A stretch of DNA of 62,877 nt from Chara braunii. Taxonomy: Eukaryota > Plantae > Charophyceae. Below are positions 72-56,610 of this stretch, in pieces. The notes below the pieces were generated by a model. That model had not been told where the DNA came from. It made no database searches and saw only the letters and a list, made by a program, of their open reading frames with translations. The stretch is taken from the NCBI GenBank assembly GCA_003427395.1, contig BFEA01000002.1:67048-129924 (forward strand). Direction: 5' to 3'. Position 1 is the first letter of the stretch, and each line of letters opens with the position of its first letter. Both the position numbers and the translations under genes were made by a program.

Positions 72-1393
72 TGCGCAGGGGGTTCCCCTGTGCTGTCTTT
101 CGTTCGGAGTGTGAGACGTGCGGAAAGAGGCCCAGAAAAACAGCAAGATGGGGTGTGCCAAGGATTTTTGGGAAATTGAGTGTGGGGACACAGATGGAAC
201 TGAAATCCCCCGTGATGGTCCGATGAAGCAAGTCAATTAGTTTCGCGCGTCGAGGACTGCGCGCGTGGACATGGTGCGAAAACAGAAAGATCCAAATTCA
301 ATCCAGAAAGTACTGTCGAGCTTCCCACCGGGCTACAGCCCGTCGTTTAGAACGGAAAGGCTCTGGCACGCTTCGCGTGTCTCGTTTTCGTATCAGATCT
401 CATCGTCGTTCACTGGTCAGCTCTGAATCCGACGTGGATGGTCTCAGCCGAGTGGCTCTTTCCTTATCCTCGTCCTCACTCCGTATTCGGTAGTGGAAGC
501 CCTTCGCTTCGTAGCGATCGAAACGCTGGCACTCCGTGCACAGAGTGCGGGGCCAATGGGGCCCCACGGCCGTCCACGGAATGACGATCAGCTCGTTAAA
601 CGGCAACAATATCGAGTAGGGTGGAAAGTGCGTATCGATAATGACAAATCCAGCGTCTACGAACCCAGAACAACGGTTGGCCTGAGGGAAGTAATACTGC
701 CCGCCGATTTGTGCGACGGCTTCTCGTACGTCCCACTCACATACACGTGTCATTTCCTCACTGTAGGGAAAAGGTCGCGTTGGGATGGGAGATACGGGAG
801 GTTGGCGCCCAATCGAAGGGTGCTTGTTAGTCCACATATCAATCAATCACATATATCCAGCAAAAATCATCCATGCGACCCTCAATCTACCCTTCTTGAC
901 ACACGAGGGAGCAGACACACATCAGCTTGATCATGCATAATGCTAAGGGACCGACCCGCGACTCAGTTCAACACAACGTTGGTTTCCGGCGCCTTATTTC
1001 TCAAGGTCGCCTGGTGGCGTGGCTGCTGATGTCGTGCCGCATAAGGCAGATGGCATGCGGAGTGCGTTCGGGACTATAGATCTAAACACTCTTGTATTCT
1101 CGAACAAAATCCCGACGACACTCGTCTAATCAATCCGAAAAGTCACGCATCTCTATACATGCATTCACTGTGGAAGGTGCGAAAATAAGACATTCACAGG
1201 AAAAAGATGGATCGCATTGCACAGTACACACGCATCCAACGTTCACAAGACAAGTTGACGGGGTCCTTGCGTAGGAGGATTACCCAGGAAACTAATGGAA
1301 GAGTTCCGGAAGAAGTTCTTTCACACAGAAACAGGAGGCCGACTCATTCCCATTCAAGAGAGGGACAATCATTCACACGCATCGTCTTTCGAG

Positions 1394-1437
<44 letters not shown>

Positions 1438-2754: not shown

Positions 2755-3676
2755 TGTGTGAGTGTGTATGAGTGGGTGGGTGGTGGGTGGATGGGTGGGG
2801 CGTGAACGCGTGGGTCGGTCGGTGGGTGGGTGAATGGTGGATCAGTGGGTGGGTGAGTGGTGGGTCGGTAGGTGGGTGAGTGGTGGGNNNNNNNNNNNNN
2901 NNNNNNNNNNNNNNNNNNNNNNNNNNNNNNNNNNNNNNNNNNNNNNNNNNNNNNNNNNNNNNNNNNNNNNNNNNNNNNNNNNNNNNNNNNNNNNNNNNNN
3001 NNNNNNNNNNNNNNNNNNNNNNNNNNNNNNNNNNNNNNNNNNNNNNNNNNNNNNNNNNNNNNNNNNNNNNNNNNNNNNNNNNNNNNNNNNNNNNNNNNNN
3101 NNNNNNNNNNNNNNNNNNNNNNNNNNNNNNNNNNNNNNNNNNNNTATGTGTCTGTGTATGTGTGTGTGTGCCCCCGTGTTTGTGTGCGTGTCACGTGTTT
3201 GTATCTGTGTTTGCAACAAAATTAAAAAGAACCCGCGACGGAAAAAAAAAACAAGAAAGCGGGAAATAACGAAAACAAAAGAAAAAAAAAGGTCGCGGCA
3301 GCAGGAAACAACAAACTTCGAGGCGCACACGCGGGCAGTCAGGCAGGGTCGCACGCTGTCTACCCGTGCTTTGTTTCTCGGAATTCAACACATTTTCAGT
3401 TTTTGCCACTCTTTCCGTTATCCACACTATACTACCGGCAGCCCTGATGAAACCGTGTTACCGGTCCCCCAAATTTCTTGACGTCGGAGGGAGTTGTGGT
3501 TTAAAAGAATAAGGCTGAAAAAAAAAAAAAAAAAAAAAAAACATTATTGACCCGCCTACCACACTGTGCGACGTAAGACGACCAGTCCCCCCGGCGTAAA
3601 AAACCTCGGGGGTACTGGTAGTGGCGTTTCACGACGGGTACCGGTAGTACAGAACGGAAAACCGGACTGGCCTTGA

Positions 3677-4290
3677 AAATTGAATTTGTGAAAAAAAAAT
3701 GAATCGGCGCGGCGCTAATTTCACGATCAAAATGATTTTTTTTATTTTTTCTGATATTTTTCCTTGAAAGATCACGACTTAATCTATGGACCCACAAATT
3801 TTCAGGCGATTTGATGAATTCTTCTGAGCTACAAAAATCGCCAAAGTTACCGCTTGCAAATGGCGCGATTGGACCGGGAGGGCCACGAAAATTGACTTCG
3901 TGAAAAAAAATCGGCGCGGCACTTATTTCACGGTCAAAATGATTTTTTTAATTTTTTCTGATATTTTTCTTTGAAAGATCACCAATTAATCTACAGATCC
4001 ACAAATTTTCAGGCGATTTGATGAATTCTTCTGAGCTACAAAAATCGCCAAAGTTACCGCTTGCAAATGGCGGGATTGGACAGGGCGGGCCACGAAAATT
4101 GACTTAGTGAAAAAACGATGCGGCGCGGCGCTTATTTCACGGTACAAATTTTTTTATTTTTTTTTTTCTGATATTTTTCCTTGAAATATCACAACCTAAT
4201 CTACGGACCCTCAAATTTTCAGACGATTTGATGAAATCTTATAAGCTACAAAAATCGTCAAAGTTACCACTTGCAAATGGCGGGATTGGA
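3677..4290. repeat. Three tandem ~210-bp units
   Basis: AAATTGA..TGAAAAAA..CGGCGCGGC.CT.ATTTCACG...GAGCTACAAAAATCG..AAAGTTACC.CTTGCAAATGGCG.GATTGGAC recurs at ~3677, ~3888 and ~4096. Confidence 0.9.
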
Positions 4291-5345
4291 CCCGCCAGTG
4301 ACGAACGGTCGCCGCCCCTCCGTAGAACCCGGCCCTAACTCACAGGGACTGGGGGGGTTCGGCGGCGGGGCGACTGGCTTTGGACACAGGCACATCCTAA
4401 CGTTGCCAGCAGCCTGATGCGGATACACTTCAAAAGAAAGCAGTCCCCTAAAACATACAGGGACCCAGTTCGCCTCAACGGTTATCTCAATGAGCAATTC
4501 GGTATTTCNNNNNNNNNNNNNNNNNNNNNNNNNNNNNNNNNNNNNNNNNNNNNNNNNNNNNNNNNNNNNNNNNNNNNNNNNNNNNNNNNNNNNNNNNNNN
4601 NNNNNNNNNNNNNNNNNNNNNNNNNNNNNNNNNNNNNNNNNNNNNNNNNNNNNNNNNNNNNNNNNNNNNNNNNNNNNNNNNNNNNNNNNNNNNNNNNNNN
4701 NNNNNNNNNNNNNNNNNNNNNNNNNNNNNNNNNNNNNNNNNNNNNNNNNNNNNNNNNNNNNNNNNNNNNNNNNNNNNNNNNNNNNNNNNNNNNNNNNNNN
4801 NNNNNNNNNNNNNNNNNNNNNNNNNNNNNNNNNNNNNNNNNNNNNNNNNNNNNNAAAAAAAAAAAAAACAAAAGAAAAGCGAGTGAAAAACGAAATAAAA
4901 AGAAAAGAAAAAAGGAAAACGACGCGTTCTTGCTATCCGACGGCGGGCGCTTCGAGATGTTCCCTCTTATCGACGCCCGCTGCCGCACGGCCTTGTGGGC
5001 GCGCTCTTTCGTTCTTTGGCGCGCTGTGAACAATTCGGTACGCGCACCACTCTGCACACAGCCGCTCCCTCGATCGCCTTCATCCCCCGGCCCTCATCAA
5101 AAGTTGAACCCGATTCCGGCGCGCAGCGGACCACCGGCCTCCCCCCGCGGCCAATGCTCCTTAAGTGTTAGGATATAATTAAAACGTAATAAAATTTAAA
5201 AAAACGCATTTTTGGCTCGGCTGGGCAAGCGGTCCTGGGCCACTATGGTAACGCAGATTACGATTAGATTTGATTTGATTCGATTGGATTTAGTTAGAAT
5301 TGATATGATTTGATTGGATCTCAATGTCATTTGATTTGTTTCGCA

Positions 5346-7631
5346 TGTGACGCCCAACCTCACTCCCAGCGCGACTTCCTGTTTTCAGAGTAAGAGGGGG
5401 CCCGAAAGTGCGTAGTAGGGGTGTGCCAAGGATTTTAGGAAAGTGGGGTGGAGTCCCAGGCCGGAACTGAGATCTTTGGTGTCAAGTTTCAAGGTCGGAC
5501 ATGCAAGTGGTTCTCTGTAGGCCCAGGTCTTGGGTTTTGCCTTTCTAAGGATCGAGCGACTAATTTCGTCGGCCCCGCCGCCTAGGGCAGGCTCCCACTT
5601 GGCGCATTGTTGGAACACAGTGGGTGTCTCGTTATTCAAACACCTGTCGTCGGCGGGTCTCACAGATCTTCGAATCCAACGTGGACGGCCTCAGCCGACC
5701 TCAGCCGGAAACTGTGTTCTCGGTGCTCAGCTTCGGAGCGGGTCTGCCGAACGAATCTCGCAACTCAGTAAGTGTTGTACTGCTGGCACTCAGAACACGG
5801 CCTTTGGGGCCAGCAGTGCGCAGTCGACTCCCAAGGGACGACCCCCAAGGGACGACCGTCAGACTATGGTAGGGAAGGACGAGGTGGAATGGAGGAAAGT
5901 GGGTCTCGATGGCGACGAATCCCGGTGAGGTGTAGTATTGGTGACTATGGACATCCGGGTACTCTGGGATTCGAGAATTTCGTCCGATGGCCTGGTGAAA
6001 GTCCCAAGCACACAGCCGATCGCCCTCCATTTGACAGGGGTAGGTCGGGAGCCTTAAGGTTGATCGACGAGAGAGCTGTTCATTCTCCCAGTATTCCCGG
6101 GACTCGGGGTTTCTTAAGATGGCACGGTCAGTGATCCAGAATGGAATGCTGCCATATTTTGCAAGAAGGACCTATCTCGTACATTTGGTTGTGCAAGGAG
6201 AGGTGGTGTTAGGAATGCGTCACGCAGACACGCGTATACAGGATGACTACCGTAGGGTGATCATTTGTATGCGTGCATGCACATGATCTGTTCCTACCGA
6301 ATCCGAATCAATTTAGATCGATCGGATGGTCGTTCGTCGAGCAAAAGGAAAGCAGTGAATAATCATTCTCATGCATCAGATGCCAATTGCGCGTAGATCA
6401 TGCAAGGGAGAAATCCAACCCATACTCAGGCATGTACACAAATCGCAACCTACTTGTTATACATGCATCTTCCCCGACCCAGGTTCGTTTAGGGAGACAG
6501 TCCCAACAGGCTTAAGGCAAGATCACTGAGTCGATCACTACCGCATGTACAAAGACATAGTCATTCCAAAAGTGGGCGGGATCACATACATTTCTCCACA
6601 CATCAGCAGGGCGTTCATTCCCTACGTCCTCATTTCTACAATCGGCAATCCTCCATGCAAACAAAACGAAGAGATGGGGGAGATAAAGATAGCTCAGACA
6701 TCAACCAAAGAAAAGAAAATCCGAGAGTGCCGCAAGCCAGGTTCGCCCGTGTGCCACAGTCCTTCGCGGCCACATGTCAACCCCGCCTACCCAGCACCAG
6801 CTCGTCGGATCTCGCCCGACTTCCTACTCACCTTTTTGTCTCCAATCGTTAGCCGATCCTCTCGACCGTGCTAACTCCCACGTGTAGATCAGAGAGCAAA
6901 TTATTCACACTTGCCAGCTTTATAGCATCCGTAGTTGCGCAACATGATTCTGGATTATTCTGAAGTAAGAGGAAAGGGGAGAGGAGGGAGTGCCTATGGG
7001 TGCATGACAGCGCCGCGACGTGGGGGACGTAGCCGCGCTCCACGCATCGATCCTGTCATGCGTAAGTGGGCCAATGAGGTAGTCAGGAAAGAGACGCCAA
7101 TTTTTGCGCGAAGAGGAAGAGATCAAGAAGAGAGAAGATTACAGTTACACCTGCGCTTGCCAAGAAGGAGCAAGAAGAAATTTGCTATTAGAATTTAGGC
7201 GCGGCGGGGGCAGAGCGCAGAACAGGACACAGTAATGCACGCGCAAGTAGGGAGCCTCGTGTAGTTGCAGCCAAAAATTACGATGCTCCCAAATTCCTAG
7301 TCTAATTAAAATCCTAATTGCAAAAAGAAATTTCGCGAACCCGTGTGGATTCAAAATTTAAAAAGAAGGAAATTCAAAAAGAAGGAAATTCAAAAAGATT
7401 CCCTGTGTGGTGGTCGCGCCAAAAAAATTCCCGTCCCACAACAGAACAAGAAAGAAGCTATGGCAACAGTTATTTCCGCGCTCGCAAAGGCGCAATCAAT
7501 TACCAACCGTTGTGGGGCCAACCTCCTTCAAAAGACAGGGGCATCCATGCAATTGGGCGGACCCCTCCCGATCAACCCCCGAAACATTGTCGCGCAGAAA
7601 ATCGCACGTTTATGGAAAGTAGTTCGTCACA
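5346..7631 (-). mobile_element. Solo LTR, family B
   Basis: TGTGACGCCCAACCTCAC...GTTCGTCACA, flanks CGCA / (A)CGCA. Reverse-complement homology to 17315-19614. Confidence 0.85.
5560..6160 (-). pseudogene. LTR-encoded CxxC protein, family B copy (frameshifted)
   Basis: IPFWITD...REYWE...CAWD...HFPPF..LPYHSLTVVPW. Removing a 14-bp tandem duplication (CCCAAGGGACGACC x2, ~5830-5857) and a 10-bp one (CCTCAGCCG. x2, ~5689-5708) restores PCSECQQ...RLRPSTLDS. One in-frame stop remains. Confidence 0.7.
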
Positions 7632-16864: not shown

Positions 16865-17314
16865 TAATTTTACTCTCCTGGAACCGTCAAATGGGCTTGA
16901 GAAGTTGGCGGCTGACATTGAGGTGTCCTTGCCATCTCTCATTCACAATGTCCCGCAGTGCTCTTTTGACCCTGAGAATTTTGTATGCAGTCTCGACTTG
17001 GAGATTAGCTAGGGTTCGGGGTTTCTGCGGGTGTCAACCCCTCTTTGTTTACGGGGGGACTACAGCCATTCTGCCGCGTCCAGTGGCAGTTCTGACAGTG
17101 GCGTATCCGGGCGGTAGGCCCGTTGGTCCTTCCCTTCCCCTAAGATTCGGATACAGTACAGCTAATCCTTGTCAGTCCATTCAAAGGGGCGGCTGCTCCC
17201 CTGCAAGGATCCATTTTCCCCAGGGAAAAGTGTTCCACCGACACATTGTCCTGTCGTACGAGGTGGATCAGGCCTACCCATCCCAGGGCATTCTTTTGGG
17301 CCACCTAGTCTCCC

Positions 17315-19614
17315 TGCGACGAACTGTTTTCTGCAACCGCGCGATTTTATGCGCAAGGCTACTTCGTGGGTTGAATCAGGAGGGCCCGTGGGATTACATG
17401 GGTGCCCTTGCTTTTCTTGTATTTTGGAATCGAGGCCGGGTAATCTTGTGACGATTGGTAGCTGGTCGCGCCTTAGCGAGCGTGAAAGATAATTGTTGCC
17501 ATAGCTTCTTTCTTGTTCTACTGTGGGAAATGGCAATTTTGGCGCGGTCGTCGCAAGGGAAAATCTTTTTGAATTTTCAACTGTCAAGCCCCCGTGGGCT
17601 CTCGGAATTTCTTCGTTCGAAATTTCTTTTTGCAATTAGGATTTAGATTAAGAATTTGGGCATGTCTCAATTTTTGTTGCACGGCGCTTCGTGCTTGCGC
17701 ACGCTCTGCCGCGTCAGGATCTGTGTTCTCATTTTTCCTCACCTTAATCCTTGCCTCTAACTGTAACTTTTGTTTTGGCGGCCATAATTGCAACTGTAAT
17801 CCTCCTGTTATTGATATCTTTTGTGGCATCCCTGTGCGCACGTAGTTCTTCTTCCTCTGTCCTATTGGCCTGAACGCTTGCATGACTGGATCGACATGTG
17901 GAGTGAGGCTACGTCCCCCGCGCCACGGCTCGGCCATGCAGACGTAGGCACTTCCTTCCTCTTCCTTCTTTTCCACTTAAGCACAACCCCGGGTATCTCG
18001 TGCAAGCATGCATGCTATAAATTTCGCAAGCGCAATTAACTCGCTCTCTAAGAATTCTTGGAGTTAGCATGGTCGAGAGGATCGGCTAACGAGCGAGATT
18101 TGGAAGGTGAGCAGAGAGTTGGGCGATCCGACAAGCTGGTGCTGGGCATGTGGGGTTGACGTGGGCCGCGACAGACTGTGGCACACGGGCGAACCTGGCT
18201 GGCATGTTCGAACTAAGAAGGTGACAACTCTGTGTGGGTGCGAGGCGATGGACCACCCGCATCGAGATGTTGTGGGGAGAGGGAGAGAGACGGGATGTGT
18301 TGTGGTGATGGTTCTCTTCCATCCTTCTGAGCAATTTTGGTATTCCGTGCCAGTCGCCTTGTCCTTCTTTTTTATCGGCATCTCGGATTTTTCGTTTTCC
18401 TTGCTTCCTTTCTTCGGAGATTGACATGTGGATTGTTTTTCCCCACCCTCTGTCTCTGTCTTTTTGAATCGGGAAATCTGATTGATTGGTACCAGACGAT
18501 CGAGCCATGTGTGATATCTATGCTGATTGGCCAAACAGTTGTTTGCATGATCCTCGATTTTTTCTGTTTGTATGAAAGCTAGATGCATGCATGATAGGCG
18601 TGATTTTGTCTGTGTATGAATTGGATAAGCATGCTAGACTATTAGATGACCGTCTCACTATAGGATGATCCATCTCACGAATCGCTGGCTTTCACACATA
18701 TGATTGAAGGACCGGTCCCGCACACGCACGTGTAGGCTTGACCAAAGACGATCGCTGCCTACACGCGCGTCTGCAACGCCTGAACTCGACTAATTTCCCG
18801 AATGGTTGGTGTTCCACCCCGACTTGCAGCATGAATTTCGGCGTTCCCTTTCGTGTCACTAACCGCGAGTGTTTGAGGGATCGGGAATTCCGGGAATATT
18901 GGGAGCACTCTTGTTTGCCTGCACAACCCTGGGCGGAACCTCCAGAATTTCCCTACTTGACGGGGAACGAGTGTATTTGCGAGTGGGACCTCAACCAGGC
19001 CTTGGGACATAACCCCCATCTCCCCAGCTACTCTAGCCCATACACGTGTCACGTCCTCACGGGGCCCAAAATCACTATCTTAGGGACCGAATTCCCTCCC
19101 TATCACCGCATCCTACCCTACCATTCCCTAACCATCGTCCCTTGGCTCGCAATCGCTCCTTACCGGCCCCAGCCCCCGTGCTCAGAGTGTCTGCGCGACC
19201 ACGAGTACCGAGCCTCCGGCTTCATCTGGCGAACTTGTTCGGCGGAAGAACAACGGGTGCACAGTCTTCGATTGAGGCCAGCCGCATCGGATTCGAAAAC
19301 TTGCAACGTTGGACATCGACAGGTGACGAATCAGCGGGATACCCATAGCGTCCCGATAGTGCACCAGATACGACCCCGACCCAGACGACGGAACCAACGG
19401 AGGCGGTAGCTCTGTCCCCCGAAGCAAAACAGAACTCCAGTCCACGCCTACCCTCCTGCATTCGTATCCCGGAGCTTGCCACAAGAGATCTCAGTTCCGA
19501 CCTCGGACTCCACCCCCACTTTCCTAAAATCCTTGGCACAACCCTTTTTCGCACTTCCAAGCCCACTCACACTCTGATCAGGAAGTCGCGTCGGGCGTGA
19601 GGTTGGGCGTCACA
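17315..19614 (+). mobile_element. Solo LTR, family B
   Basis: TGCGACGAAC...GTGAGGTTGGGCGTCACA with a perfect 4-bp TSD TCCC. Confidence 0.9.
18738..19409 (+). CDS. Uninterrupted LTR-encoded CxxC protein of unknown function, family B (first ATG at 18831)
   Basis: 223-codon open frame with PF.VT...FREYWE...FPY...CEWD...FPPY..LPYHSL..VPW...CSEC...GF..R..S.EE...LRP..SDS, homologous to six other copies. Confidence 0.65.
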   Translation: MTKDDRCLHARLQRLNSTNFPNGWCSTPTCSMNFGVPFRVTNRECLRDREFREYWEHSCLPAQPWAEPPEFPYLTGNECICEWDLNQALGHNPHLPSYSSPYTCHVLTGPKITILGTEFPPYHRILPYHSLTIVPWLAIAPYRPQPPCSECLRDHEYRASGFIWRTCSAEEQRVHSLRLRPAASDSKTCNVGHRQVTNQRDTHSVPIVHQIRPRPRRRNQRRR

Positions 19615-34685: not shown

Positions 34686-34745
<60 letters not shown>

Positions 34746-38809: not shown

Positions 38810-38927
38810 GTCAAACAGAGCTGCTCGGTAAACCGTAGGCAGAGAGGGAGAAGAGGACAACAAACGAAGGGGCTGTGACAAACTGTTTCGCCAGAGTTTC
38901 ACCGACTCATCAGGAGGCTGAACCCTC
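38810..38927 (-). mobile_element. Hammerhead-element copy beginning at the predicted cleavage site
   Basis: Minus strand: (TA)nGA|GAGGGTTCAGCCTCCTGATGAGTCGGTGAAACTCTGGCGAAACAG...GTTTGAC|TATAT. Stem II is retained through G-U pairs. Confidence 0.8.
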
Positions 38928-38992
38928 TCTATATATATCCTCCTGATGAGTAGATGAAACTCCAACAAAACAGTTTGTCACAGCCTCTCGTT

Positions 38993-41680
38993 TGTGACGC
39001 GCAACCTCACGCCCTGTGCTGTCTTCCGTTCGGAGTGTTTTCGATTGCGGAAGGGGGCCGTGGACAAACAGGAAGATGGGGTGTGCCAAGGATTTTTGGA
39101 AATTGAGTGCGGGGATAAGGACAGAACCGAAATCCCCTGTGTTGGTCCGACTTAGTAAGAGGGAAGGGTCCGTCACTGCGCGGGATGTTCGATGCGGGGA
39201 AATTCAATCCAAAAAGTATCGTTGAACTTCCCAGCGGGCCGTTGCCCTTCGCTTAGTGTGAAAGGGGGCGGGTACACTTCTAGTGTCTCGTTTTCGGATC
39301 AATTCCCGACGCCGCTCATTGCACAACTCAGAATCTGATGTGGACGGTCTCAATCGTGTAGCTCGTTCTTTGTGTTCGTCCTCGCTCCGTATGCGGTAGT
39401 GGAAGCCCTTGGATTGGTAACGCTCGAGGCGACAGTAGTCACTACACAGAGTGTTGGGGCAATGGGGCGCTATTGCCGTCCACGGAATGACAATCAACTC
39501 GTTAAACGGTAATAGCAGTGAATAAGGCAGAAAATGTGTATCAATAATGACAAAACCTGCTCCGACAAATCCTGAGCGACGAGTTTCAAGAGGGAAATAA
39601 TATCGGCCGCCGATCTTGGCGACGGCTTCTCGTACGTCCCACTTGCATACACATGTCATGTTCTCGTTGTACGGAAAGAGACGTGGCGGGAGTACGGGAG
39701 GCCGGTGCCTTGTCGAGTTGGGGCCTTCAGTCCACATGAAGAATCAATCAATAATCGTTCATCATTAATCCCCGTTTATCGATCGGGCTTTTCTGGTTAT
39801 CGCCTTTATCTGTCGGAAACATGCAAGGCAAAATGGGGACATCTTTCGTCTCTCAGAGAGAGAGAGCTTGCAATAGTCTATGGTTCCGCCCAGAAATTTT
39901 CATACAGTGATCGTAGGGATGGTACCTACATCAAGTGGGACCTAGCTAGTGATCCACGCATGCAGGTCGTACGTGGCGCCCTTCTTCTTTTCGAGAAGGC
40001 AAATCGCTTTTCGGGTTTGTGAAACGAGGGCAAGCCGCAGAAGGTACGCGGAACGTATTCCGGAGTGAAGGCCTGCCCGAAATCACAACATCATCAGATC
40101 TAAACACTCTTGCGATCTCGAACAAAATCGCAACAATATTGTTCCAGCCAACAGCTCAATCGCAACCCATTCATCATAATTCTTCAGCCAAATCAAAAAC
40201 CAATCCATCAATGACAAAGCATTCGCAATTACTGTCAAGTGCTTCGTGTGCTCTGCACCCCTGCCCCGTTATCCCGAGTCTATCAAAGCGCCGGCCCATC
40301 AGGCAACCATTCCCAAACATGCATAGTCATTCACATCAGAAGATAAGCAAGCGAAATGAATTTCATAGAGGACAATCACACAGAAGTATGGAGCTGAAAA
40401 ATAGTTCCGGCTTAACTGCCGGCTTAACTGCCGCGAAGCTGCACTCACACCAAAGAATAGGACAAAAACAAGGGAACGCATCCGCCATAATGTTTCGTCA
40501 TGGCCCCGGGCCATTCATCCCTTTAACTCTTGTCACTCCTCATACATGCACCAACGGTCCCGCCCGTCGCGTGCCACTTGCCACCATCGCGATCGTCACC
40601 CCGCCGACTTAGTTTCTGCGAGGGCTTGCCCTGATCCCACATTCCGTCGTGGCGATCAGGTGCATAACCAGCCAGTCTACAGTCAGCCCATCGGGACTTT
40701 TCGACTCGCACCACACGCACACCATCTAGCCACTACTTCCCGGAAGCTGGCTGACGAGTTGAGAGAGAGCTTTGCGGATGCGCCGGTGGAATTTATAATT
40801 GCGAGAGGGGAGAGAGATGCGGGGAAAGATGAAGAATAGGGTAAGAGGAGGGTAAGGGAGGGTTTGAGGGTAATCGCTCGTTGAAAGCCATGTTGATCCC
40901 TCACAACCCGATCTCAGCCAATCAAAATCGGCGCGCAGTAGGAATCTCCTCTTACACGACGCTTCTCCTTGGCTAGATGGAAAGGGAGGATCGACCTCGT
41001 TTTCGAGCGCAAGTTTGAGAGCGGGAAGAAGAAGAGTGAGAAGGATAGCACGAAATGGGTCCAAGATTCAGATGATCAAGAAAGAGAAAAAAGGCGCGCG
41101 TGGGGAAGGAGGGAGAAAAACAGTTACAGGGAAAGGGAGCGAGAAAGCATGTGCGCGCGAGGGAAGGTGCTAAGAGGAGCACGAGAAGGAAGGAGGAGGG
41201 AACTCGTTTACATGGTGCCGAATAGTAAGAGAAGAATGGGCACCTAAATAGTTGCAGTTTTTCCCAGTCCTATGCTAATTCAAAAATTGAGGTCACCATA
41301 TCCGCGCGAAAAGTAGACGTGGGAAAATAAAGTGCTACGCCCATCCCTATTCCTACAAAATTCCCAGAGTTTTTCATGTCAAGGCCAAAAACATTCGCTC
41401 GTGAAAGGACACGCCACGTTCCGTTAATTACGAAATTCCTAACTGTCGAGCCGAATTTCGAACGCGCTCACTAAGGCGCGCGTAATTCCCATGCATTTCC
41501 AAATTAAAAAAAGATGACGGAATTTCAAGAACTACTAGTGCTGACGAACGAGGTACCTTTAATCGAGCAAAAACAGAGGGGAGGTTTTCGGGGCCGATCA
41601 AGACACATCTAGATGCAGAGAAAACACGGGAAGGAAAGGGGTCCGAAAGATGGCGCAGGTCCGGAAGCTGGTTCGTCACA
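38993..41680 (-). mobile_element. Solo LTR, family A
   Basis: TGTGACG...CGTCACA, 4-bp flanks CGTT/CTTT, host repeat continues on both sides. Confidence 0.9.
39204..39737 (-). CDS. Uninterrupted 177-aa LTR-encoded protein of unknown function, family A
   Basis: ATG-to-stop ORF. The MWT start and YFLD* end are shared with the other two family A copies. Here the CxxC reads CSDYC. Confidence 0.65.
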   Translation of the reverse strand: MWTEGPNSTRHRPPVLPPRLFPYNENMTCVCKWDVREAVAKIGGRYYFPLETRRSGFVGAGFVIIDTHFLPYSLLLPFNELIVIPWTAIAPHCPNTLCSDYCRLERYQSKGFHYRIRSEDEHKERATRLRPSTSDSELCNERRRELIRKRDTRSVPAPFHTKRRATARWEVQRYFLD

Positions 41681-43409
41681 CTTTTGTTGTCCTTTTCTAC
41701 CGGGCAGCTATGTTTGACTACATATATATATGTATATATATATATATATGAATATATGAAGTAAGCGATATTCTTCTCTTAATTTCACCTCACACTACCT
41801 ACTCCTTTTTTTTTATAACAAAAACAATTTTCAATTACATCCGGGAAACGAACCCAACATCCCTAATATGAATGTTGCAGCCATACAAGGTTGAGAAAGA
41901 CACTTTCAGCCAATCCTATCCCTGACCACAACAGTTCCGCTGTCGAGACCCCGACCTTCCTAGTACTATAAGACTCAAGTTGCAAAAAGGAAAGAAAGGA
42001 AAAAAAACAGCATGCCAAAAAAAAAAAGAAAGGAGAAAAGCTAGCATGCCCAAGGCACAAAGGAAATCTACCGGCTTGTAAAGGCTAACCATATTAGTTT
42101 TCACCACCACCCTACCTTGTGCATTCCTTTGTATGTGTCGCATAATGGTTCTTACTTAGCTGGTTCCCCCTGAGTAGGACTCTCCCTTGATATTGCATAG
42201 GTATTGGGACCGTAGCGTTATTTTGGCTTCCCTGCTCCCTGATCTGGCTTCCTCCCTAGTCGGTGAGTTGTGTGCATGTTTCCCTCACCCACTACCCTCA
42301 TCACCCTAATGTCGGCCATTGCATGCCTTCAACTAGGTATATCTCTACCTTATCCCCGACTCCCCTTTCATGGTAGACCCTGCATGGTGTCACCCTTTTG
42401 TCAGGCATTACCCGCCTTGATGGTCTATTTGTTAGGGTCATTGGTTTTGTTTCCCTACCATTCCCTCGCCCTAAGCCTTATGACCTATCCCATCTTCATG
42501 TGTGACGACCCTTAGGAGTTTCGATTCTCAGGCTGCATTCACCCCCTCTGAGACGATCCCACTCTTAGTGGCTTGGCGACTCGACATTATCTTGTGACAT
42601 ATTGCAATTTTTTCCTTTCACCACCGAGGTAATTGCCTCTAGGACTTTATAATTGCACCCTGCTACATTTCGTTTCGTGCTGCTACCGAGGATGTGTATA
42701 TCAGACATTTACTTTTGCTATGATATTATGTAGCTTAGGCTGCATTGCATGCCATTGGACTCCGCATGGGGCTTGCTCCGCATCCTAGATTTCTCAGCTT
42801 TATTGTTGCAGGGTTCTGCTGCTTTTGTTGAAACGTGTTTATGACTCTTGTGATCCACACTATAGGTATCAGGATCGTGCAATGTGCCTCCAGCTGCTCT
42901 GGGCTAGAGTCAGGGCTATCTGTCTATTTTGCCTGTTCGGTTTGTGGTACCAGGCCATGTGCTCATTCAGTCCAGTCCAGTCCTACCCGATACCTTTGTC
43001 GATACCAGGCCAGTCTAGTCCAGTCCAGTCAGTCCACTGGGGGTATACCCAACTGCAGTCTATTTTCAACCGCATTCTTCATTTGCACATTTTGGAGTAC
43101 TGTTGAGTCTGCGTTGGAGCTGCACTGTGTCTTCCAACTCCTTCTCCATCTCCCTCATCCTCATTTCATTCCTTTATCCTAACGGACCGCCATCCCGGCG
43201 GGTCCATCAAAGTGTTGCTACGACTACCACTCCTATCTCTTTCCTGATGACTCGCAATGTTCTGCTTTTGTTAACTCTGGATTCGTGATCGTATATACTA
43301 TTTTTGCCCCTTATTCGATCCTGTTACCGTATAATGGGCTCACGGTTTATCCCTTGGGCCGCCATCGCTCCCTAGTGGCCTCGCACCCTGTGTTCAGACT
43401 GTAGACATA

Positions 43410-43818
43410 GTGAACATTTACAAGAAAAAGAGTTTGAGTACATGCCCCATCGAGAAGCAGAAGAGACGGATGGGACTTCGCGTTTGCGGTCGTCTGATTC
43501 CAAGTCCAAGCTTTACGAGACACGTAGACAAACCATCACAACTTTTGAAATTAAGACATTGAACAATATAAATTTTCCTCGCATTTTTTATTCGTCTGAG
43601 ATTTCACAGCAAGAAGGTCTATCCTGACTCCTTGCTATAGCTCAATCCACACATGGAACTGATCTGAGAGATTCCAGTTCCAACTTGGAACTCTACCCCT
43701 ACCCCCCCTCTTCCCAAAAATCCTTGGCACACCCTCATTTTTCTCACTTTTTTGGGCGTTCCACACTAGCACCCACTGCGAAAGGTACACAACGCTGGGC
43801 GTTAGGTTGTGCATCACA
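43410..43818 (+). mobile_element. 3' fragment of an A/B-related LTR
   Basis: TSRLRSSDSKSKLYETRR (cf. ATRLRPSTSDSELCNERR); CCAAAAATCCTTGGCACACCC; ends GTTAGGTTGTGCATCACA. Confidence 0.7.
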
Positions 43819-48059: not shown

Positions 48060-48760
48060 GCATAGCGCAGGTGCACATGCGGCACAATTACGAATTAAAA
48101 TGAAAACAAAAAAATCAAAAGGGCAGGCTGTTGTAACCAAATGTGTGCCTCCCTTTTAAACCACCAGTATCTCGCTCAGCTATCAAGTGCGAGCCTCCTG
48201 CTACCGGTAAGCCGAGCCTTGCGGAGCCTAGAGCTATCGGTAGCGGACTTTGTTTCTTTTTTTTGAAAACCAAAAAAGAAAAAAAAAAGAAACGTTTCTT
48301 TAAATGACCGTTGATCCATCGATAATCTCGGGACCTCTCGGTGGCTCGACGCCTGTCGTGCTTAGTGAGATGGTCCGGTGGTTGGCCAGCTAATTTAGCG
48401 AATAATATTTTATCCGTCCATACTTCCGCCCGTCGGTATTTTTTGTTGTATTTGGGGTCGTCCGTTCGGGCGGCCTCGAATCGAACTTCCGTAGGAAGTT
48501 TGTTCGTTCTACACAGGGGGCATCTCCATTCCTTACTGCTTGTTCTGTATCGAACACACGCGTCGTGTGTCCGATTAACACACGTGGCACATTCTACCCA
48601 GTCAGTGAATCCAGACTGGAAGGGATAGTAGTCTACCCCATAAAATCGGGCAATACACGTGCAAAAATAACAAAATTTGTCTAGGAGATTGGCGAGAAAG
48701 TCCGAATGAGCGAGGGGAGCAGAATAGGTGGGAGAGGCAGAAGAAGGTGGGGTTTCCATT
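48060..48760 (-). pseudogene. PHD finger followed by pre-integrase linker and a degenerate integrase Zn-domain remnant
   Basis: CYFC...WVECATCVNRTHDACV...WRCPLC; AEVWTD...RRRA..RS.DYRWINGHL; frame-broken ARYWWF and IRNCAAC. Confidence 0.6.
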
Positions 48761-48849
48761 GTTCCGAGAGAGGGAGAGGAAAAAAAGAAGAGGGAAAGAG
48801 AGGAACGCGATTGGGTGCACGTGTCAACTTAGCCCTTTGGCGGGATCTC

Positions 48850-50672
48850 CACTTGTCCGTACTAAGGCTTGTTTTTCGGCTTCGGGTCGTGCCACGGGAT
48901 CACTTCCTCACTCCTGGAGTCCTGGGTACCTTGTTGGGGCGGTGCAGTCGTGTCAGCCCGCCCGCGTTGCCGTGTCTCTCGTGCTTTCGATGATGAATGT
49001 CGAAGTCCATACTCTGCAACGTGGTAGCTCATCGCCCGATCGTACACGAGTAATCCTTGGACTTCTTCAATGCCAGCAGCGGTTCGTGATCGGTTACCAA
49101 CGTGAACTTCCAGCCATATAAGTACGCTCGGAAGTGACTGATCCCCCATAAGGCTGCGTAGCATTCCCCCGTCGGGGCGAAGTAGTTGCGCTTACATGCA
49201 GGCACCGATTTGGACGCATATTCCACCACGTGTTCGAGGTCGTCTGGTCCTACCCGGGCCAAGATCGCTGAGATTGCCTCGGGCTGCCAATTGGTGATGA
49301 GGACAAAGGGTTTTTCCGGGTCCGAACTCATAAGGACCGGAGCTGAAATCAAGGTCACCTTGAGTTCTCAGAAAGCCCGATCGCATTGCGGGGTCCAGAT
49401 CAACGCTGATTTTTTTTCAGCAAATTCGTGAGTGGTCCGCGATCGCCGCAAACCCCTTGATGAACCTTTGATAGTACGATGCCAAACCCAAAAAAGTACG
49501 CACTTGTGTCACGGACGTTGGTAATGGTCCGTAACCACGTGGCCGACGAAGGAGATCTCGGACCTTCTGAGGCTCCGACTGCAACCCTTGGTCCGTAACC
49601 ACGTGGCCGACAAAGGAGATCTCGGTGAGGAAAAACTGACACTTCTCAACAGCCACCTTGAATCCGGCGTCCTTCAGCGCGCGCAAAGTCCATTCGATGT
49701 GCTGCACGTGCCCCTCATAGGAACCTGAATACACAAGGATATCATCCATAAAGACAATCACAAAATAATTGATTATGCTCTGCGCCAGCCGCGTTTTTCG
49801 CACGAAGTTCTAGAAAGCCATATTCATCGCGCGCTGAAACGTGGCCGGGGCGTTGCAAATCTCCATCGGGCATCGAACCCATTGCCAAGTCCCTTCGAAA
49901 AGAATGAAAGCCATTTTCGGGCGATCCTCTTTTCGAACAAGGAGATGGTGAAATCCATGTCGAACATCAAACTTGCTAAAAAAACGAGCACTACCAATAA
50001 CATCCAGCAACTCATCGATCTGGGGGAAGGGATACACATCCTTAATTGTGATGTCATTCAACTTTCGGTAATCAATGCATAAGCGGATTCCCCTTGCTTT
50101 TTTGGCACAATCACCACCGGAAACGACCATGGTCCGATGGCGGGTTCGATCCACCCATTAGCTTCGAACTCCTTTATCCTTTGAAATGCGGCCGATCTTC
50201 GCGCCGACGAATACCGATAGGGAGTGCAACTAATTGGTGAATGATCCCCGGTGAGGATCGCGTGCTCAATCACGTTGGATAACCCAATATCATTATCGTG
50301 CATACTCAACACCTCAGCATACCCATGCAAAACATCAATTAGGGATCTTCGGATCTCTCGGGGGACATAATTGGGTATTGCGATTACAGGGTGATCGGAG
50401 ATTTCAAGTGGAGTATCGATCCAATCCTTCCTTCGTGATCGTCTGTTGTCTACGCTGGAAAATATGGAACTACCAGTTCGGACCGAGAAGACGGTGACAA
50501 TCATCTGTGATTCGGTCGGGCTAATCATCTCGGTTTCCTTAATTTCGGCATCGGTTTCAAGGTCAGTGGTGCTTTCCGCCACTTTCAATCCTGTTAGCTC
50601 GGCCATTTCTTGCATAAGGCTCGGAACATCGTCTATCGGGGCTTCTGCTTCTAGCTTGATTAGGGCGATCAT
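48850..50672 (-). pseudogene. pol: Ty3/gypsy RT and RNase H (frameshifted)
   Basis: IEHAILTGDHSPI..PYRYS, GWIEP..PWSFPVVIVPKK, RLCIDYRKLN, NAPATFQR, FMDDILVYS, FLGLASYY, PFVLIT, ECYA, FTLVTDH. Confidence 0.92.
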
Positions 50673-50990
50673 GGCTCCCTGCGTGAGTAACGATCAAGGT
50701 GGGGCGCGCCCTCGTACAAAGTGCGAGCAGGTTCCAAGAGGTCAGGCATGTCTGAAATCTGCAGGATCGGTTCTCCTAGGAATGACGTGGTGGGAATCCG
50801 CTTTTCTGCAGATGCGGGAAAGAATGTCGACAGAATATGACTAGGCTCGCCACTTCCTGGGCTCAAATCGAACGTTCGGGTGGTTGCTGGAATTATTCGA
50901 AATTTCTTTTTCGTCTCTCAACCGAACATTTTCAACTAATTGTTCCCATTCTTTTCCGCTAGGTATGTAGTTCATTTCTTCCTCATAATT

Positions 50991-51794
50991 TTATTCGTCG
51001 CTTTCACCATCATCAGCAAAGTGTTGTTTATCGTCTGAGGGTGAATTTTTCGAGATCGGGACTTGGATAATTCCTATCCGGACAATACTAGGATTCTTTT
51101 TCGGTGATCGAGTAAAAACCCGTAACGGCAGCGTTTGAGGCCTCCCTCCAGTGTGCATGAGGACAAATTGTTTAGAATCGACGTGTATTCGCGCACCTAC
51201 CGCCATCGCCCAGGGCAATCCCAACAGTACCGAATAAGAGTGCACATCGACGACTAACGCTTTAACCAGAACGTGGACTCGATCCACTTTGACAACTACG
51301 TTCTCAATGATTCCTACTATATTCATAGCTTCTTCATCGCCCGAGACGTAGTTGTCCTTCCTAGGTAGTGAAAGGATCGAGTTCAATCGGCCCGTTTTTC
51401 TCACTGTGTCTAGGGATATAGCTACGACCGATGATCCGGTATCGATAAGAGCATTAAACAGTTTACCCCAGACTTTGCAATCACACTCAACACTTTTCCA
51501 TAGGACCGATCGAACACACACAAAATGATCTTTTTCCGCGTAAGAGATGGCGACGATTCGTGCCGTTTCAGGTGCGTCAGGTTCAGTCACAGGGGGAGGG
51601 TTTGCCTCAACCTCGACATATTTCTTCTTTAGCATACACTGAACACGCTGATATGTGAAGCGTTTTTTATTCTTCTGACATTGTTGCAGAAGTTTATCAT
51701 TTGTGACTTCGGATATGGTCAGCAAGTGCCCTGCTGGGACTAGAACTCGGATGTCCAACTGCTTGAGCGTTTGCAGGACATCGATTTCTCCCAT
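50991..51794 (-). pseudogene. Ty3/gypsy aspartic protease region
   Basis: ALIDTGSS and SVLLGLPW motifs. Confidence 0.85.
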
Positions 51795-52049
51795 TTGAAA
51801 TTGTGGTCAAGGTTCTGATCCCCGCTCGACCCATTCGAGCTCATCTTTGCCAAGTCGGATTGCTCCGATCAGTCCTGCCAAATGAAGGTACTCGGCAAGA
51901 TCAACGACATCGGTGGCTTTGGAAGATGATCTCGAAGTAGACGCGATGGGGTCGGTCGAAGGCGGTTGTTCGGTAGAGAAGGAAGTGGCTTCCCTTGTGG
52001 TTTCCAATACTGCGGCCACCCGACCTTGATTCAAGGTCACCGGCGCGGC

Positions 52050-53189
52050 CGCTGGCGGACATTGATTACGTTTTGGCTGGGGGCATTCACTCGCAAAGTG
52101 TCCAGGCTGTTTACAGTTGTAACATTAAATCCTCCCCGTTGGATTGACCGCATGAGGGGGAGCGGGAGGAGTTGGTCCAAGTATAGGAGGGGCGGTCAGC
52201 AGAGGGCACGAAGCAGGAATGGGGTGGGAAGGGCTGGAATTTGCTTTTATTAGGTTCCCCATAATTTGTTCCAATCGATCCATCTGGGAAGCCTACATCT
52301 TAATCAGATTATTCATCCACTCAGACTGTTTAGTCGTAGCGGTATAAATCATCTGGGCCAGATGCATGTTAGTGATAGGCACTGATGCAGCATCTTGGGG
52401 CATTACTGTATTCACGAGCGCCATCTTGGAAGGAAGAAGAGGTTTCGAGAGAGGAGGGATCCGGGGTGGGTCCGTCCTGGTAGTCGTGATCAGAACGAGG
52501 GTAAAATCATCCCACCGCTCTGAGCCACGACTGCCATTTAGCAGCCACATCTTGGATCGTGTCTGAGATTCTTCCTCTCCCTAACTGATATGCTTGCGTG
52601 TATCCAGCAGATCCAGTTCAAGGGCTTTAGCTATGATGACGGGTAGCTGGCTCGTCTTGGGAGGAACCTTTTTCTGCAGTTCTGCTTTCAACACTGGATT
52701 GCGGAGATGATCGATAAGCAGATCTCGAGCAGCGTTTTCTTCCCGTCCGGATTTGTCTAATGCGGTCCGAAATCGATCCACAAAGTCGGGTAAAAGCTCT
52801 CCGGGTTTCTGCGGACGGGTTTTTAGTACGAACCATGCAGCATCTTCGCTGACTGCGTAGAACCTTGCTAGGAACGCCCTATGGAATGTATCCCAATCTA
52901 CCCATCTATGCCTTCTAAACCAGTCATGTGCAGTGTTTCCTAGTAGCAGGGTAATGACGCGGGGAAGATCCTCGGCGTCATATCCCTGAGCTTGAATGGC
53001 TTCGAGCCATGCCTCTGGATGAGTGTTGTTGGGATAGAATGGGAAGGTAGCGGGGATGCTTACCATCACATGGGAAGGTGTTCCATTAGCATCGACCATG
53101 GGCATCTCTAGTCGAGCTTCGGCGGACCTCTGTTGAGTGACGGGAGGACTAAGACAGTTAGATCGTTTAGCTGATCTTCCTCTCACCAA
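52050..53189 (-). pseudogene. gag: Ty3/gypsy gag with CCHC zinc knuckle
   Basis: AHDWF...WDTFHRAFLARF...Q.PGE...FVDRF; CYNCKQPGHFASECP at ~52080-52125. Confidence 0.85.
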
Positions 53190-53222
53190 CTCGTCTTACT
53201 ATCGTCAGAGCCAACACATGTC

Positions 53223-53235
53223 GGCTCCGATACCA
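53223..53235 (-). promoter_or_regulatory. Primer-binding site, tRNA-iMet type
   Basis: TGGTATCGGAGCC directly after the LTR (canonical plant iMet PBS TGGTATCAGAGC, one G-U). Confidence 0.85.
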
Positions 53236-56064
53236 ACCTCACACCCTGCGCAGTCTTTCATTCGGAGTATTTAAATTGTGGAAGGGGCCCCAGAGAGATA
53301 GTGAGATGGGGTGTGTCAAGGATTTTTGGAAAGTTGAGTGTGGGGACACGGACAGAACCGAAATCCCCTGTGCCGGTCCGACTTAGTACTAAGAAGGGGT
53401 AGGGTCTGTCACTGCGTGGGTTTTGAGGGGAAAAAAGGCGCATGCGGGACACACGACGCGGGGAAGTTCAATCCAAAAAGTACCGTTGAACTTCCCATCG
53501 GGCCGTTGCTCCTCGTTTCGCGTGAAAGGGGGCAGGTACTACGTGCTTGGTGTCCCGTTTTCGGATCAAATCCCGACGCCGCTCATTACATAACTCAGAA
53601 TCTGACGTGGAGGGTCTCGGCCGCATGACTTTTTCCTTATGTTCGTCCTCACTCCGTACTCGGTAGTGAAAGCCTTTTGATTGGTAACACTCGAAGCGAC
53701 AACAATCGCTGCACAGAGTGTGAGGCCAATGGGGCGCCACTGCCGTCCACGGAATGACGATCAACTCATTAAACGGCAATAGCAGCGAATAAGGCAAAAA
53801 ATGCGTATCAACAATGACAAAACCAGCACCACCGAACCCCGAGCACTGAGTTTCGGGAGGGAAATAGTATCGACCGCCGATCTTGGCGACGGCTTCTCGC
53901 ACGTCCTACTCGCATACACGTGCCCTCTTCTCGTTGTACGGGAAGGGACGTGGCGGGGATACGGGAGGTCGATGCCCAGTCGGGTTGAGGCCATCAGTCC
54001 ACATAGCAATCCAATCAGTCGCGAAGTTTGACCTCAACCATTCATCATGAGTCTGACAAGCGTAGTGATAGAAAGTACACAACCTATCGATCAGGTTTTT
54101 TTGGCGCTAGCTTTTATTCACCTTAGTCATGCGAAACAAGGTGAGAACACTCCTCAATTTCCTCAAAAATAGTTCATAGAGAGAGAGAATATTCGCGATG
54201 ATCTAGCGGTCTCGCTAGGAAGTCTTCACAAAGAAACCGTGGGGACAGGACTCATACTGGGTGAGACGGGACAATTGATCCACGTGTGCAGGTCGCACGT
54301 GGCACCTTTTTTCTTCCGCCTCTCGGGTTTTGCGTATCGAGGGCAAGCCGCAAATGTCGTGCAGCATAAGGCAGATGGCATGCGCAGTGTATTTCAGGTT
54401 AAAGATCCTGGGGTACTCGCCCGCAATCACATCACCAACAGATCTAAACACTCTTGCAAAACATTGTCCCTGCCAACGACTCGACCATGTTCAAGCATTC
54501 CATTCGCAACAGCTCTTCGGCCTTATCAAAGACCAGTCCATCAAACGATAATTTCATCATCCGAGTATTTCCATCTACACTTAAGATCACTTATCACGGA
54601 AGGTGCAAAAATGACAGCCATGCATCATTCAGTTCTCCGTGTGCTCTGCACCCCTGCCCCGTCATCCCATGGCTAATCAAACGCAAGCCCATCAGACAAC
54701 CATTTCATGACAAGCATACATAGTCATTCATGCCATAAAGTAGGTGGGGAGATGAAGTGTGAAATGGATGTGAACAACAAGATATATGAAGATCACGCAA
54801 AAATCTGAAGACGAAAATAATTTTCGGCTTAACTGTCGTTGAGTTGCACTCACACGAAAGAATAAATTTGAGATAAGGAGGCGCATCTGCCGTGAAGTTC
54901 CACTATGGCCCCGGGCCATTCATTCATTCAACTCCAATCACTTTCCCATGCATGCACTGACGATCCGAGCCGTCGCGAGCCACTTTCCACCACTGTGATC
55001 GTCACCCCGTCGACTCAGTCTTGACAAGGCCTTCTCGGATCCCACAGTCCGTCGTGGTGATCAGGCGCACCACCGGCCAGGCTACAGTCAGCTCGTTGGG
55101 ACTTTTCGACTCGCACTTAACACATACCATCTAGCCACTGCTTCCCGGAAGCTGGCAGACGAGTTGAGAGAGAGATTTGCGGACGCGCTTGCGGAATTTA
55201 TAATTGCGGGGAGGGAGGTAGGTACGAGGGAGGATGAAGGTTGAGTCGGGGAAGGGTGAGAGAGGACTTGGGGGTAATCGCCCGGCGAAAGCCATGTCGA
55301 TCCTACTGAGTCCGATTGCAGTCAATCAGAGTCGTCGCGTAATAGGAGTTTCTCCTTACACGGCGCCTCTCCTAGGCTTGGACGGAGTGAGGGGAGGATC
55401 GATCGGGCTCTTGGGCGTAGGACTCAGAGTGGGAGGAAGAAGGGTGTGCAGGATAGCGTGAAACGGATCCAAGATTCAAATGATCAAGAAAGAGAAAGGG
55501 CGCGCGGGGAGCAAGAGAGAGAGAGAGAGGGAAGAACAGTTATGGAGTGAGTGAGCGCGGGCGTGAAGGGGGCATCGAAGATGGCGAGGGGAGCAGAAAG
55601 GGGGAAGCTCGCTTGCATGGCGCCAATCACAAGTGCAAAAAGAGGCACCAAAACAGTTACAGATTCCTAAGTCCTATGCTAATTCAAAAATTGAAATCAC
55701 CATATCCGCGCGTAAAGCAGGCGTGGGAAAGGCAGTTCTACATCCCTTCGTATTCCCACCAAATTCCCAGAGTTTTCCGCGACGTGATCGAGAACATTCA
55801 TGCATAAAAAGGACACGTCGGGTTCCGTTTATTTCGGAATTTCTAACTACCGGGCCAAATTCCTAGCGCGCTTACTAAAGCGCGCGCCATTCCCATGCAT
55901 TTCCCAAATTATGAAAACATAATTTCAAGAATCAACACGGGTCTCAGCAAGGCATCTTTAATCAAAAACAGAGAGGGGCCTTGTTGGGCCGAGTAAACTT
56001 TGGAAAGAAAAAGAGAGAGAAGGGGTCTGGAACATGGCGCAGACTCAGAAGCTGGTTCGTCACA
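53236..56064 (-). mobile_element. 5' LTR (family A) of the gypsy element
   Basis: Begins TGTGACGAACC on the minus strand, colinear with 38993-41680, lacks the last ~11 nt before the PBS. Confidence 0.9.
53468..54004 (-). pseudogene. LTR-encoded CxxC protein, family A copy with a W>stop change
   Basis: MWTDG...PFPY...VCE*DVREAVAKIGGRYYFP...CSDC...YFLD*. Confidence 0.75.
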
Positions 56065-56610
56065 CTCGTGGCAAGCCTATGAATCCGACGAGGCCGGCCT
56101 CAGACAGAGGTTGTGTGCTCGCTGCTCGGCCTCGGTCCGGGTTCGTCGAACGAATCCCGCGGCTTGGTACTCGCTGCCTTGTTGGCACTTGGAGCACGAG
56201 GTTCGGGGCTAGTAGGGGGCGATCGCGTGCCAAGGGGCAGCAGTCAGGCAATGAAAGGGCAATACGAGGCGGTAGGGAGGGAATCCCATTTCAAGGATGA
56301 TGATACCAGGTTCGGCTATGACGTGGGTTACGTGTGAGCTGGGGAATTGGGAGGGAAAGGGGATTGCGCTTGAGGCCCGTTCAATGTCCCATTCACAGAA
56401 CCGTTCTTCCCTTGTCCGATAGGGAAATTTCAGAGGGTTGGGTCTGGGTCGTGCGAGAAGACAAACGTTCTCCCACTCCCAATGCTCCCGGAATCGCCGG
56501 TACCTCATAGTTTTCTGATCCGTTATATGAAACGGAATTTCGTTATCCATACCGTCGTAAGTTTCGTCATGGGTTCTGGAGGCGGGTCTTGCAGATACGC
56601 GTGTGAGCAA
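56065..56610 (-). pseudogene. LTR-encoded CxxC protein, family B copy with stops
   Basis: IPFHITD...FREHWE...FPY...CEWD...FPPY..LPFH.L..PW..IAPY*PRTSCSKC...EY...GF.RR...LRPASSDS*. Confidence 0.7.

Follow-up and report, generated by a model that had tools for sequence, protein, structure and literature searches.

A reading frame under purifying selection inside the long terminal repeats of Ty3/gypsy retrotransposons of Chara braunii

Long terminal repeats (LTRs) are normally non-coding, the exceptions being genes such as sag of mouse mammary tumour virus (MMTV) and nef of human immunodeficiency virus (HIV) in U3. They are treated as control regions, and annotation pipelines mask them without a search for genes. 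A stretch of 62,877 nucleotides (nt) from the streptophyte alga Chara braunii (assembly GCA_003427395.1, contig BFEA01000002.1, positions 67,048 to 129,924 of the forward strand), here called the window, raises the question of whether LTRs of the gypsy type can carry a gene of their own, as a first-pass annotation had claimed that one open reading frame (ORF) recurs within the LTRs of two diverged gypsy families. The analysis showed that the ORF lies inside the LTR, in both LTRs of single elements, and that it is under purifying selection between replicating lineages. We consider it quite likely that it is a real accessory gene of a C. braunii Ty3/gypsy lineage, serving the propagation of the element.

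The reading frame and the LTRs that carry it

The same reading frame was found seven times in the window by six-frame reading and tblastn, with the sense given in the first-pass annotation: three times in a family A, three times in a family B and once as a fragment in a third family, C, where it extends further than the partial copy at about 43442-43530 noticed before. The copies are as follows.

298-837, minus strand: ORF copy A1, with an MWT start and a YFLD stop; premature TGA at 400-402
39204-39737, minus strand: ORF copy A2, intact, 177 amino acids (aa); stop about 210 nt before the LTR end
53468-54004, minus strand: ORF copy A3, with a single TAG at 53906-53908, which is the Trp codon of the CEWD motif; stop about 230 nt before the LTR end
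about 5566-6153, minus strand: ORF copy B1, with a frameshift from a 14-bp duplication, plus stop codons
18738-19409 (frame), plus strand: ORF copy B2, intact; likely ATG at 18831, giving 192 aa; stop 205 nt before the LTR end
56080-56550, minus strand: ORF copy B3, with stops at 56209-56211 and 56077-56079; the inserted A3 element cuts it off at 56065
43213-43543, plus strand: ORF copy C, degenerate, containing a stop; C-terminal half readable (PW...CxxC...LR.S)

Two copies, A2 and B2, are thus uninterrupted, while the other five of the seven are broken by lesions that are specific to each copy, both as claimed before; the start ATG of B2 is also present in B3. The ORF runs in the sense of gag-pol and stops 205-235 nt upstream of the LTR 3' end, in agreement with the earlier estimate of about 200-230 bp. 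The proteins of A2 and B2 are 36% identical over 143 aa in an ungapped alignment (E 2e-31), although nearly no blastn signal is left between the DNA of the two families. Runs of N are absent from all ORF copies and from the LTRs of A2, A3, B1 and B2; the LTR of A1, which ends at 2754 and does not reach the gap at 2888, contains one single N, which is outside the ORF.

The coordinates that had been given as LTRs mark the ORF copies and not the repeats themselves. In self-comparison and alignment, the repeats reach about 1.5-2 kb upstream of the ORF, and the real LTRs of families A and B measure 2.3-2.8 kb. They start with TGTGACGAAC and end with GTGAGGTTG(C/G)GCGTCACA, both motifs being far commoner than in shuffled sequence, and the termini TGTGACG...CGTCACA were seen in A1, A2, B1, B2 and in L001. 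The latter is one of the loci of the same public assembly that were included in the study (among them L001, L003, L008, L009 and L010); L008, L009 and L010 were obtained through a protease-piece search of annotated proteins. The LTRs and the associated element parts in the window are listed here.

67-2754 (2688 bp), minus strand: LTR A1, solo or 3' LTR; starts with TGTGACGAACC and ends with ...CATCACA beside a (CA)n run
38993-41680 (2688 bp), minus strand: LTR A2, probably solo; flanks AAAG/AACG agree at three of four bases
53236-56064 (2829 bp), minus strand: LTR A3, 5' LTR of a decayed gypsy element, without the last 11 nt of solo and 3' LTRs
5346-7631 (2286 bp), minus strand: LTR B1, preceded by a partial copy of its right-end segment
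17315-19614 (2300 bp), plus strand: LTR B2, solo, with the 4-bp target site duplication TCCC at 17311-17314 and 19615-19618
56065-58398, minus strand: LTR B3, its 3' side cut off by insertion of the A3 element
42501-43818 (about 1.3 kb), plus strand: LTR C, with recognisable start and end motifs
53223-53235, minus strand: primer-binding-site (PBS)-like TGGTATCGGAGCC directly after LTR A3, agreeing at 12 of 13 bases with the PBS of L010, TGGTATCAGAGCC
48118-53195, minus strand: decayed internal region of the A3 element, with gag, a CCHC knuckle (52124), protease (PR), reverse transcriptase (RT), RNase H and a PHD-like finger

The partial right-end segment before LTR B1 suggests that B1 is a 3' LTR. 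The A3 and L010 binding sites presumably match initiator tRNA-Met. For the host element of family A, the order gag(CCHC)-PR-RT-RNase H was seen by Pfam and six-frame reading, which bears out the gypsy assignment made before for this family. An integrase was not seen in the A3 element of the window, where an assembly gap intervenes, and the fetched loci were not searched for one. The possibility that A2 and A3 flank a single element was considered and rejected, as the two are 20-27% diverged with a ratio of nonsynonymous to synonymous substitutions (dN/dS) of 0.17; moreover, their flanks show no 4-bp duplication, nor is A2 followed by the remainder of B3.

Full-length elements were available in the public loci. 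L008, L009 and L010 each contain one full element with the ORF in both LTRs, the two copies lying about 11.4 kb apart, and the order in all three is LTR ORF, gag, CCHC, PR, RT, RNase H, PHD and again LTR ORF. Identity between the two LTRs amounts to 93.9% over 2742 bp for L009 and to 96.5% over 2758 bp for L010; for L008 it is 94.8% over 630 bp, with gaps hiding the remainder. In L003 and in a second element of L010, the LTR ORF is likewise followed by gag, and in all six 5' LTRs seen the ORF is situated about 270-370 nt upstream of gag. Since the ORF is within the LTR boundaries, it is copied to both ends of each new insertion. Copies of a further family, D, were found on small Chara contigs. 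L001 has an A1-like LTR with an AT-rich insertion of about 530 bp in its tail (1975-2505), between the ORF and the last 50 nt, and on the same contig an LTR ORF of family D runs the opposite way at 2602-2940.

The ends of these elements are unusual. As in the A3 element, the 5' LTRs of L009 and L010 are without the last 11 nt, and their end ...GAGGT runs directly into the PBS (window 53223-53240; L009 17483-17500 and 20215-20228; L010 17265-17285). Solo and 3' LTRs have the 11 extra bases TGCGCGTCACA, and the same 11 bases occur once immediately before the 3' LTR, where the junction forms the palindrome CGTCACA-TA-TGTGACG (a split-end, A-internal-B-A-B layout). The usual Ty3/gypsy layout, with identical LTR ends and a polypurine tract before the 3' LTR, is not seen here, and the layout is therefore atypical.

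Selection on the frame and alternative explanations

Selection was assessed from dN/dS by the Nei-Gojobori method. The family A pairs of the window gave values of 0.12, 0.15 and 0.17 and the pair B2-B3 gave 0.30, with the differences of the window pairs distributed over first, second and third codon positions as 30/25/80 (p 1e-9), 27/31/74, 19/14/54 and 54/44/74. Family D yielded 0.10-0.19 and A1-like elements 0.11-0.25. Overall, dN/dS between elements was 0.10-0.30, and a strong excess of third-position changes was present only in the frame of the ORF. The other five frames all contain stops; four of them give dN/dS above 1 in family A (0.78-0.95 for B2-B3), and the values of the fifth, which is antisense and has its wobble position in common with the ORF, are low as well.

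The two LTRs of the same element, which are identical when inserted, served as the neutral control. Three such pairs differed in the ORF at 2/9/6, 8/6/9 and 5/8/8 positions, with dN/dS of 0.96, 0.56 and 0.63, and the pooled differences (15/23/23) show no codon-position bias. The pooled share of third positions was 0.38 within elements as compared to 0.55 between them (Fisher p 0.01). As a benchmark, the dN/dS of other genes of the same elements was 0.15-0.42 for gag, 0.05-0.15 for PR, 0.12-0.13 for RT and 0.09-0.22 for the PHD region. The ORF is thus under purifying selection between replicating lineages and is as constrained there as gag, RT and the PHD region, while inserted copies decay neutrally. 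The claim of a protein-coding gene in the LTR, selected across diverged families, is upheld by these frame-specific values. On the other hand, the proposal that it is a selected gene surviving in every solo LTR is not supported, as the even spread over codon positions between the LTRs of one element places the selection on the replicating lineage and not on inserted or solo copies, most of which are broken. From the location in the LTR, the selection at the level of the lineage and the neutral decay after insertion, it follows that the protein serves the propagation of the element and not the host.

Apart from the ORF, the conserved islands within the LTR are a block of roughly 200-260 nt directly after a TATAAA motif and a short tail block that is common to families A and B at the DNA level. 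The presence of such non-coding blocks is in line with the idea that the ORF, too, is a conserved cis-acting DNA or RNA element (a promoter, a packaging signal or an R/U5 structure) in which the open frame is incidental. However, changes cluster at third codon positions and do so in one frame only, the other frames have stops and four of the five are without such constraint, and A and B keep the protein although their DNA has diverged beyond alignment. Because of the codon-position pattern, this explanation is excluded for practical purposes. The position of the ORF 270-370 nt upstream of gag in 5' LTRs could alternatively indicate a leader ORF in the style of a long upstream ORF, where the act of translation and not the product regulates the translation of gag downstream. 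It would also fit that the start is preceded by a ATTGATTGA-like motif and a short ATG-rich stretch, which reads as an upstream frame of a few codons in three of the window copies. Yet an ORF that only has to be translated would not hold its amino acid sequence at dN/dS 0.1-0.2 across families that are 36% identical, and the model would need a transcription start upstream of the ORF. We give it little chance of being right.

If the gene is regarded from the side of the host, it could be a domesticated gene that benefits the alga and is kept in many LTR copies, including solo LTRs, and indeed both intact copies of the window (A2 and B2) sit in solo-type LTRs. Nevertheless, the LTR pairs of single elements have diverged neutrally, lesions break five of the seven copies in the window, and the number of intact ones does not exceed what would be expected of ORFs of 530-580 nt at a few percent divergence from their source, which leaves domestication with a negligible probability. 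Somewhat less remote, but still very unlikely, is the capture of a host gene fragment into one LTR lineage, where it would be a passenger without a role for the element. Plant LTR elements do take up pieces of host genes (PMC7264820), and an annotated Chara protein, GBG61242.1 (CBR_g19774, 1077 aa; L003 6001-84218, BFEA01000018.1), contains the domain. This protein is, however, a chimeric gene model of 78 kb in which an LTR ORF copy (residues about 427-576) stands between a Myb/SANT-like part and the exons of a DCP1 decapping domain, and the LTR copy within it precedes the gag-pol of its own element. The existence of the LTR gene thus accounts for at least one chimeric gene model in the Chara annotation. 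What makes capture improbable is that no non-LTR copy was present among the matches found and that the ORF has kept its place in at least four diverged LTR families; in addition, the constraint on the ORF is as strong as that on gag and pol.

The protein, its expression and its proposed role

The predicted protein is 175-190 aa in size and basic (pI 9.1-9.6). An N-terminal and central core, rich in Pro, Trp, Phe and Cys, is followed by an acidic, Ser-rich patch (LRPS.SDSE) and a Lys/Arg-rich C-terminal third. Families A, B and D share the following invariant or nearly invariant residues: a Cys-x-Trp, the F-x-P, L-P and P-W around a hydrophobic stretch, one Pro, the first Cys of the CxxC pair, one Gly and an R-P. 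The motifs listed in the first-pass annotation are therefore real, with the reservation that its CxxC reads CxxYC in A2 and that Tyr replaces the first cysteine of the pair in a family D copy in L001. Conservation extends to three cysteines only, one in C.W(D/E) and the two of the CxxC pair, with no fourth invariant Cys or His; a zinc site is for this reason unproven, and the evidence for the metal binding suggested before is weak. No segment has the hydrophobicity of a membrane anchor; no window of 19 residues exceeds 1.5 on the Kyte-Doolittle (KD) scale.

To the earlier remark that no known domain is recognisable, the searches added no exception. Pfam gave no match for A2 and B2 at E values up to 1, and a word-indexed search of 5.8 billion proteins matched a single sequence, an ORF without a name from a contig associated with Chara. 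When the profile was run exhaustively against 1.84 billion representatives, three true matches were returned, all from Chara and including GBG61242.1; two further weak matches (an HNH repeat and a CUB domain) were dismissed as spurious. A metagenome scan led only to the same Chara-derived BFBZ01 contigs, the profile gave a single chance match (E 0.14) against the PDB sequences, and the ESM Atlas, approached by sequence features, offered nothing usable. Fold searches with the model of the core remained at the level of noise (best Z 3.6, best TM 0.37). As LTR ORFs are rarely annotated as proteins, matches from Chara only do not show that the family is restricted to Chara.

A TATAAA motif is conserved in the LTRs of both families and is a candidate promoter, situated about 1.0-1.2 kb upstream of the ORF in the LTRs of family A.

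55197-55202, minus strand: TATAAA of LTR A3
1849-1854: TATAAA of LTR A1
40792-40797: TATAAA of LTR A2
6919-6924: TATAAA of LTR B1
18016-18021: TATAAA of LTR B2
57658-57663: TATAAA of LTR B3

Between this sole conserved TATA box and the start codon of the ORF there are 21-38 AUGs, which makes plain scanning from that promoter unlikely. We infer from this that translation would use an LTR-containing transcript that is subgenomic, spliced or started at a promoter inside the LTR. Both families retain GTGAGT-like donor motifs, and the A1-like group shares a pyrimidine-rich CAG site that resembles an acceptor; this hints at splicing and a possible spliced leader. On the other hand, AUGs persist downstream of the acceptor-like site and no splice joint was seen in RNA reads.

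The protein itself would act in trans and probably in the nucleus, either as a helper of the expression or integration of the element or as a shield against silencing by the host. By analogy with the retroviral accessory genes located within U3 or extending across it, we infer such a trans-acting, probably nuclear helper or counter-silencing role. The split-end layout of the elements is atypical, and the protein is on this account a concrete candidate for a missing replication or silencing-evasion factor. A more far-reaching proposal is that each LTR is a self-contained gene, with promoter, perhaps an intron, ORF and terminator, and that the orphan protein would be the lineage-specific factor enabling the odd life cycle of the group, by acting at the palindromic end-to-end junction, from which integration of the split-end elements has to proceed, or by protecting its own family from silencing. 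We consider this extended proposal unlikely, but, if true, it would describe a retrotransposon accessory function without a described counterpart.

Several points weigh against the view that the ORF is an accessory gene that serves the element. Its route of expression is unexplained, given the many upstream AUGs that separate the TATA box and the ORF, and its translation is a prediction from sequence. When the reads of three oligo-dT RNA-seq runs were mapped on 52500-57290 (A3/B3), the depth was low, and most reads were partial matches less than 95% alike that came from diverged A1-like relatives. Transcript start, end and splice joint were not defined by these three runs, which is no proof of silence. 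As to the strand, two of the runs lean to the sense of the element, while one covers both strands, reflecting DNA carry-over or bidirectional RNA. AlphaFold2 modelled the protein with low confidence: the mean predicted local distance difference test (pLDDT) score was 42 over the full length and 54 in the core, where residues 10-72 reach a pLDDT near 70 and form a helix and three strands, whereas the CxxC region is below 50. As no family or fold was matched, the functional part of the reading rests on analogy. Finally, an internal region of family B is absent from the window, where the gypsy nature claimed for both families could accordingly be seen for family A only.

Comparison with known systems

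Among known systems, the MMTV sag and the nef/bet type of genes are the closest analogues. Like sag, the Chara gene is a complete ORF inside the LTR, in the gag-pol sense, that ends shortly before the LTR end and is present at both ends of the provirus. Unlike sag, it encodes a protein without a Pfam match and without a segment of membrane-anchor strength (maximum KD 1.48), and its host is an algal Ty3/gypsy retrotransposon and not a betaretrovirus. Neither a sequence match to Sag nor the type II membrane anchor of a superantigen was found in the LTR ORF protein. The Chara ORF may be located in U3, as sag is, or in R/U5, as a leader cistron. The nef of HIV and simian immunodeficiency virus and the bel/bet of foamy viruses are accessory genes for which the U3 of the 3' LTR provides coding sequence, and their service to the element is directed against the host and is not reverse transcription as such. 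They differ from the Chara ORF in that they start in the internal region and only overlap the LTR, while the Chara ORF is wholly inside it, and no homology was detected.

Additional ORFs (aORFs) of unknown function are found lineage-wide in plant retrotransposons, such as ORF1 of Ogre, the env-like ORFs of Athila and Bagy2 and the antisense ORFs of Grande, RIRE2 and Retand (PMC7264820). They resemble the Chara LTR ORF in being conserved about as well as gag-pol and in having no host homologues, but they are internal, between the 5' LTR and gag or between pol and the 3' LTR, and the review describes none inside an LTR (PMC7264820). No sequence similarity between them and the Chara LTR ORF was found. 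In the literature, we found no description of ORFs inside the LTRs of plant or algal retrotransposons, only the retroviral cases. VANC of the Arabidopsis VANDAL21 is a transposon-encoded, fast-evolving and lineage-specific anti-silencing protein that acts in trans on its own family. It might be a functional analogue, to be taken as a lead only, as it belongs to another class of transposon and shows no homology.

The LTR ORF is well supported as a real feature and is best read as a retroelement accessory gene within the LTR, here of an algal Ty3/gypsy lineage and with an orphan protein as its product. With it, a placement of genes known mainly from a handful of complex retroviruses (sag, nef and bet) is seen in the Ty3/gypsy elements of a streptophyte alga, where the gene is conserved as strictly as gag and pol across families too old for DNA alignment. 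Its products form an orphan protein family whose selective signal is clear and for which no fold is known.

The other features of the window are of minor importance for this question. A PHD-like finger at 48118-48828 (minus strand), between RNase H and the expected position of integrase, has a weak Pfam PHD match (E 0.002); it is also present in L008 (13529-14020), L009 (13200-13727) and L010 (13156-13659), with dN/dS of 0.09-0.22, and may be a chromatin-reading module for the choice of insertion site. Rfam gave no match in the window at gathering score. A hammerhead type III ribozyme-like motif at 22057-22112 (plus strand) reached 45.8 bits, below the gathering score of 48.5 (E 4.9e-9), and a second hammerhead-like motif at 38880-38975 (minus strand), a 96-nt palindrome with a CUGAUGAG...CGAAAC core located about 10 nt past the end of LTR A2, scored 23.4 bits. 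Hammerhead-like arms of the same kind are found at 62716 and 62829, and a Penelope-like element or a retrozyme may have left these motifs behind. The region 30741-36554 (plus strand) contains a decayed retroposon of the long interspersed nuclear element (LINE) type, with endonuclease- and reverse-transcriptase-like ORFs and an internal repeat of about 420 bp (33702-34117 and 34219-34636). Between two assembly gaps, at 3661-4319 (plus strand), a unit of 207-210 bp is present in three tandem copies that are 71-92% identical.

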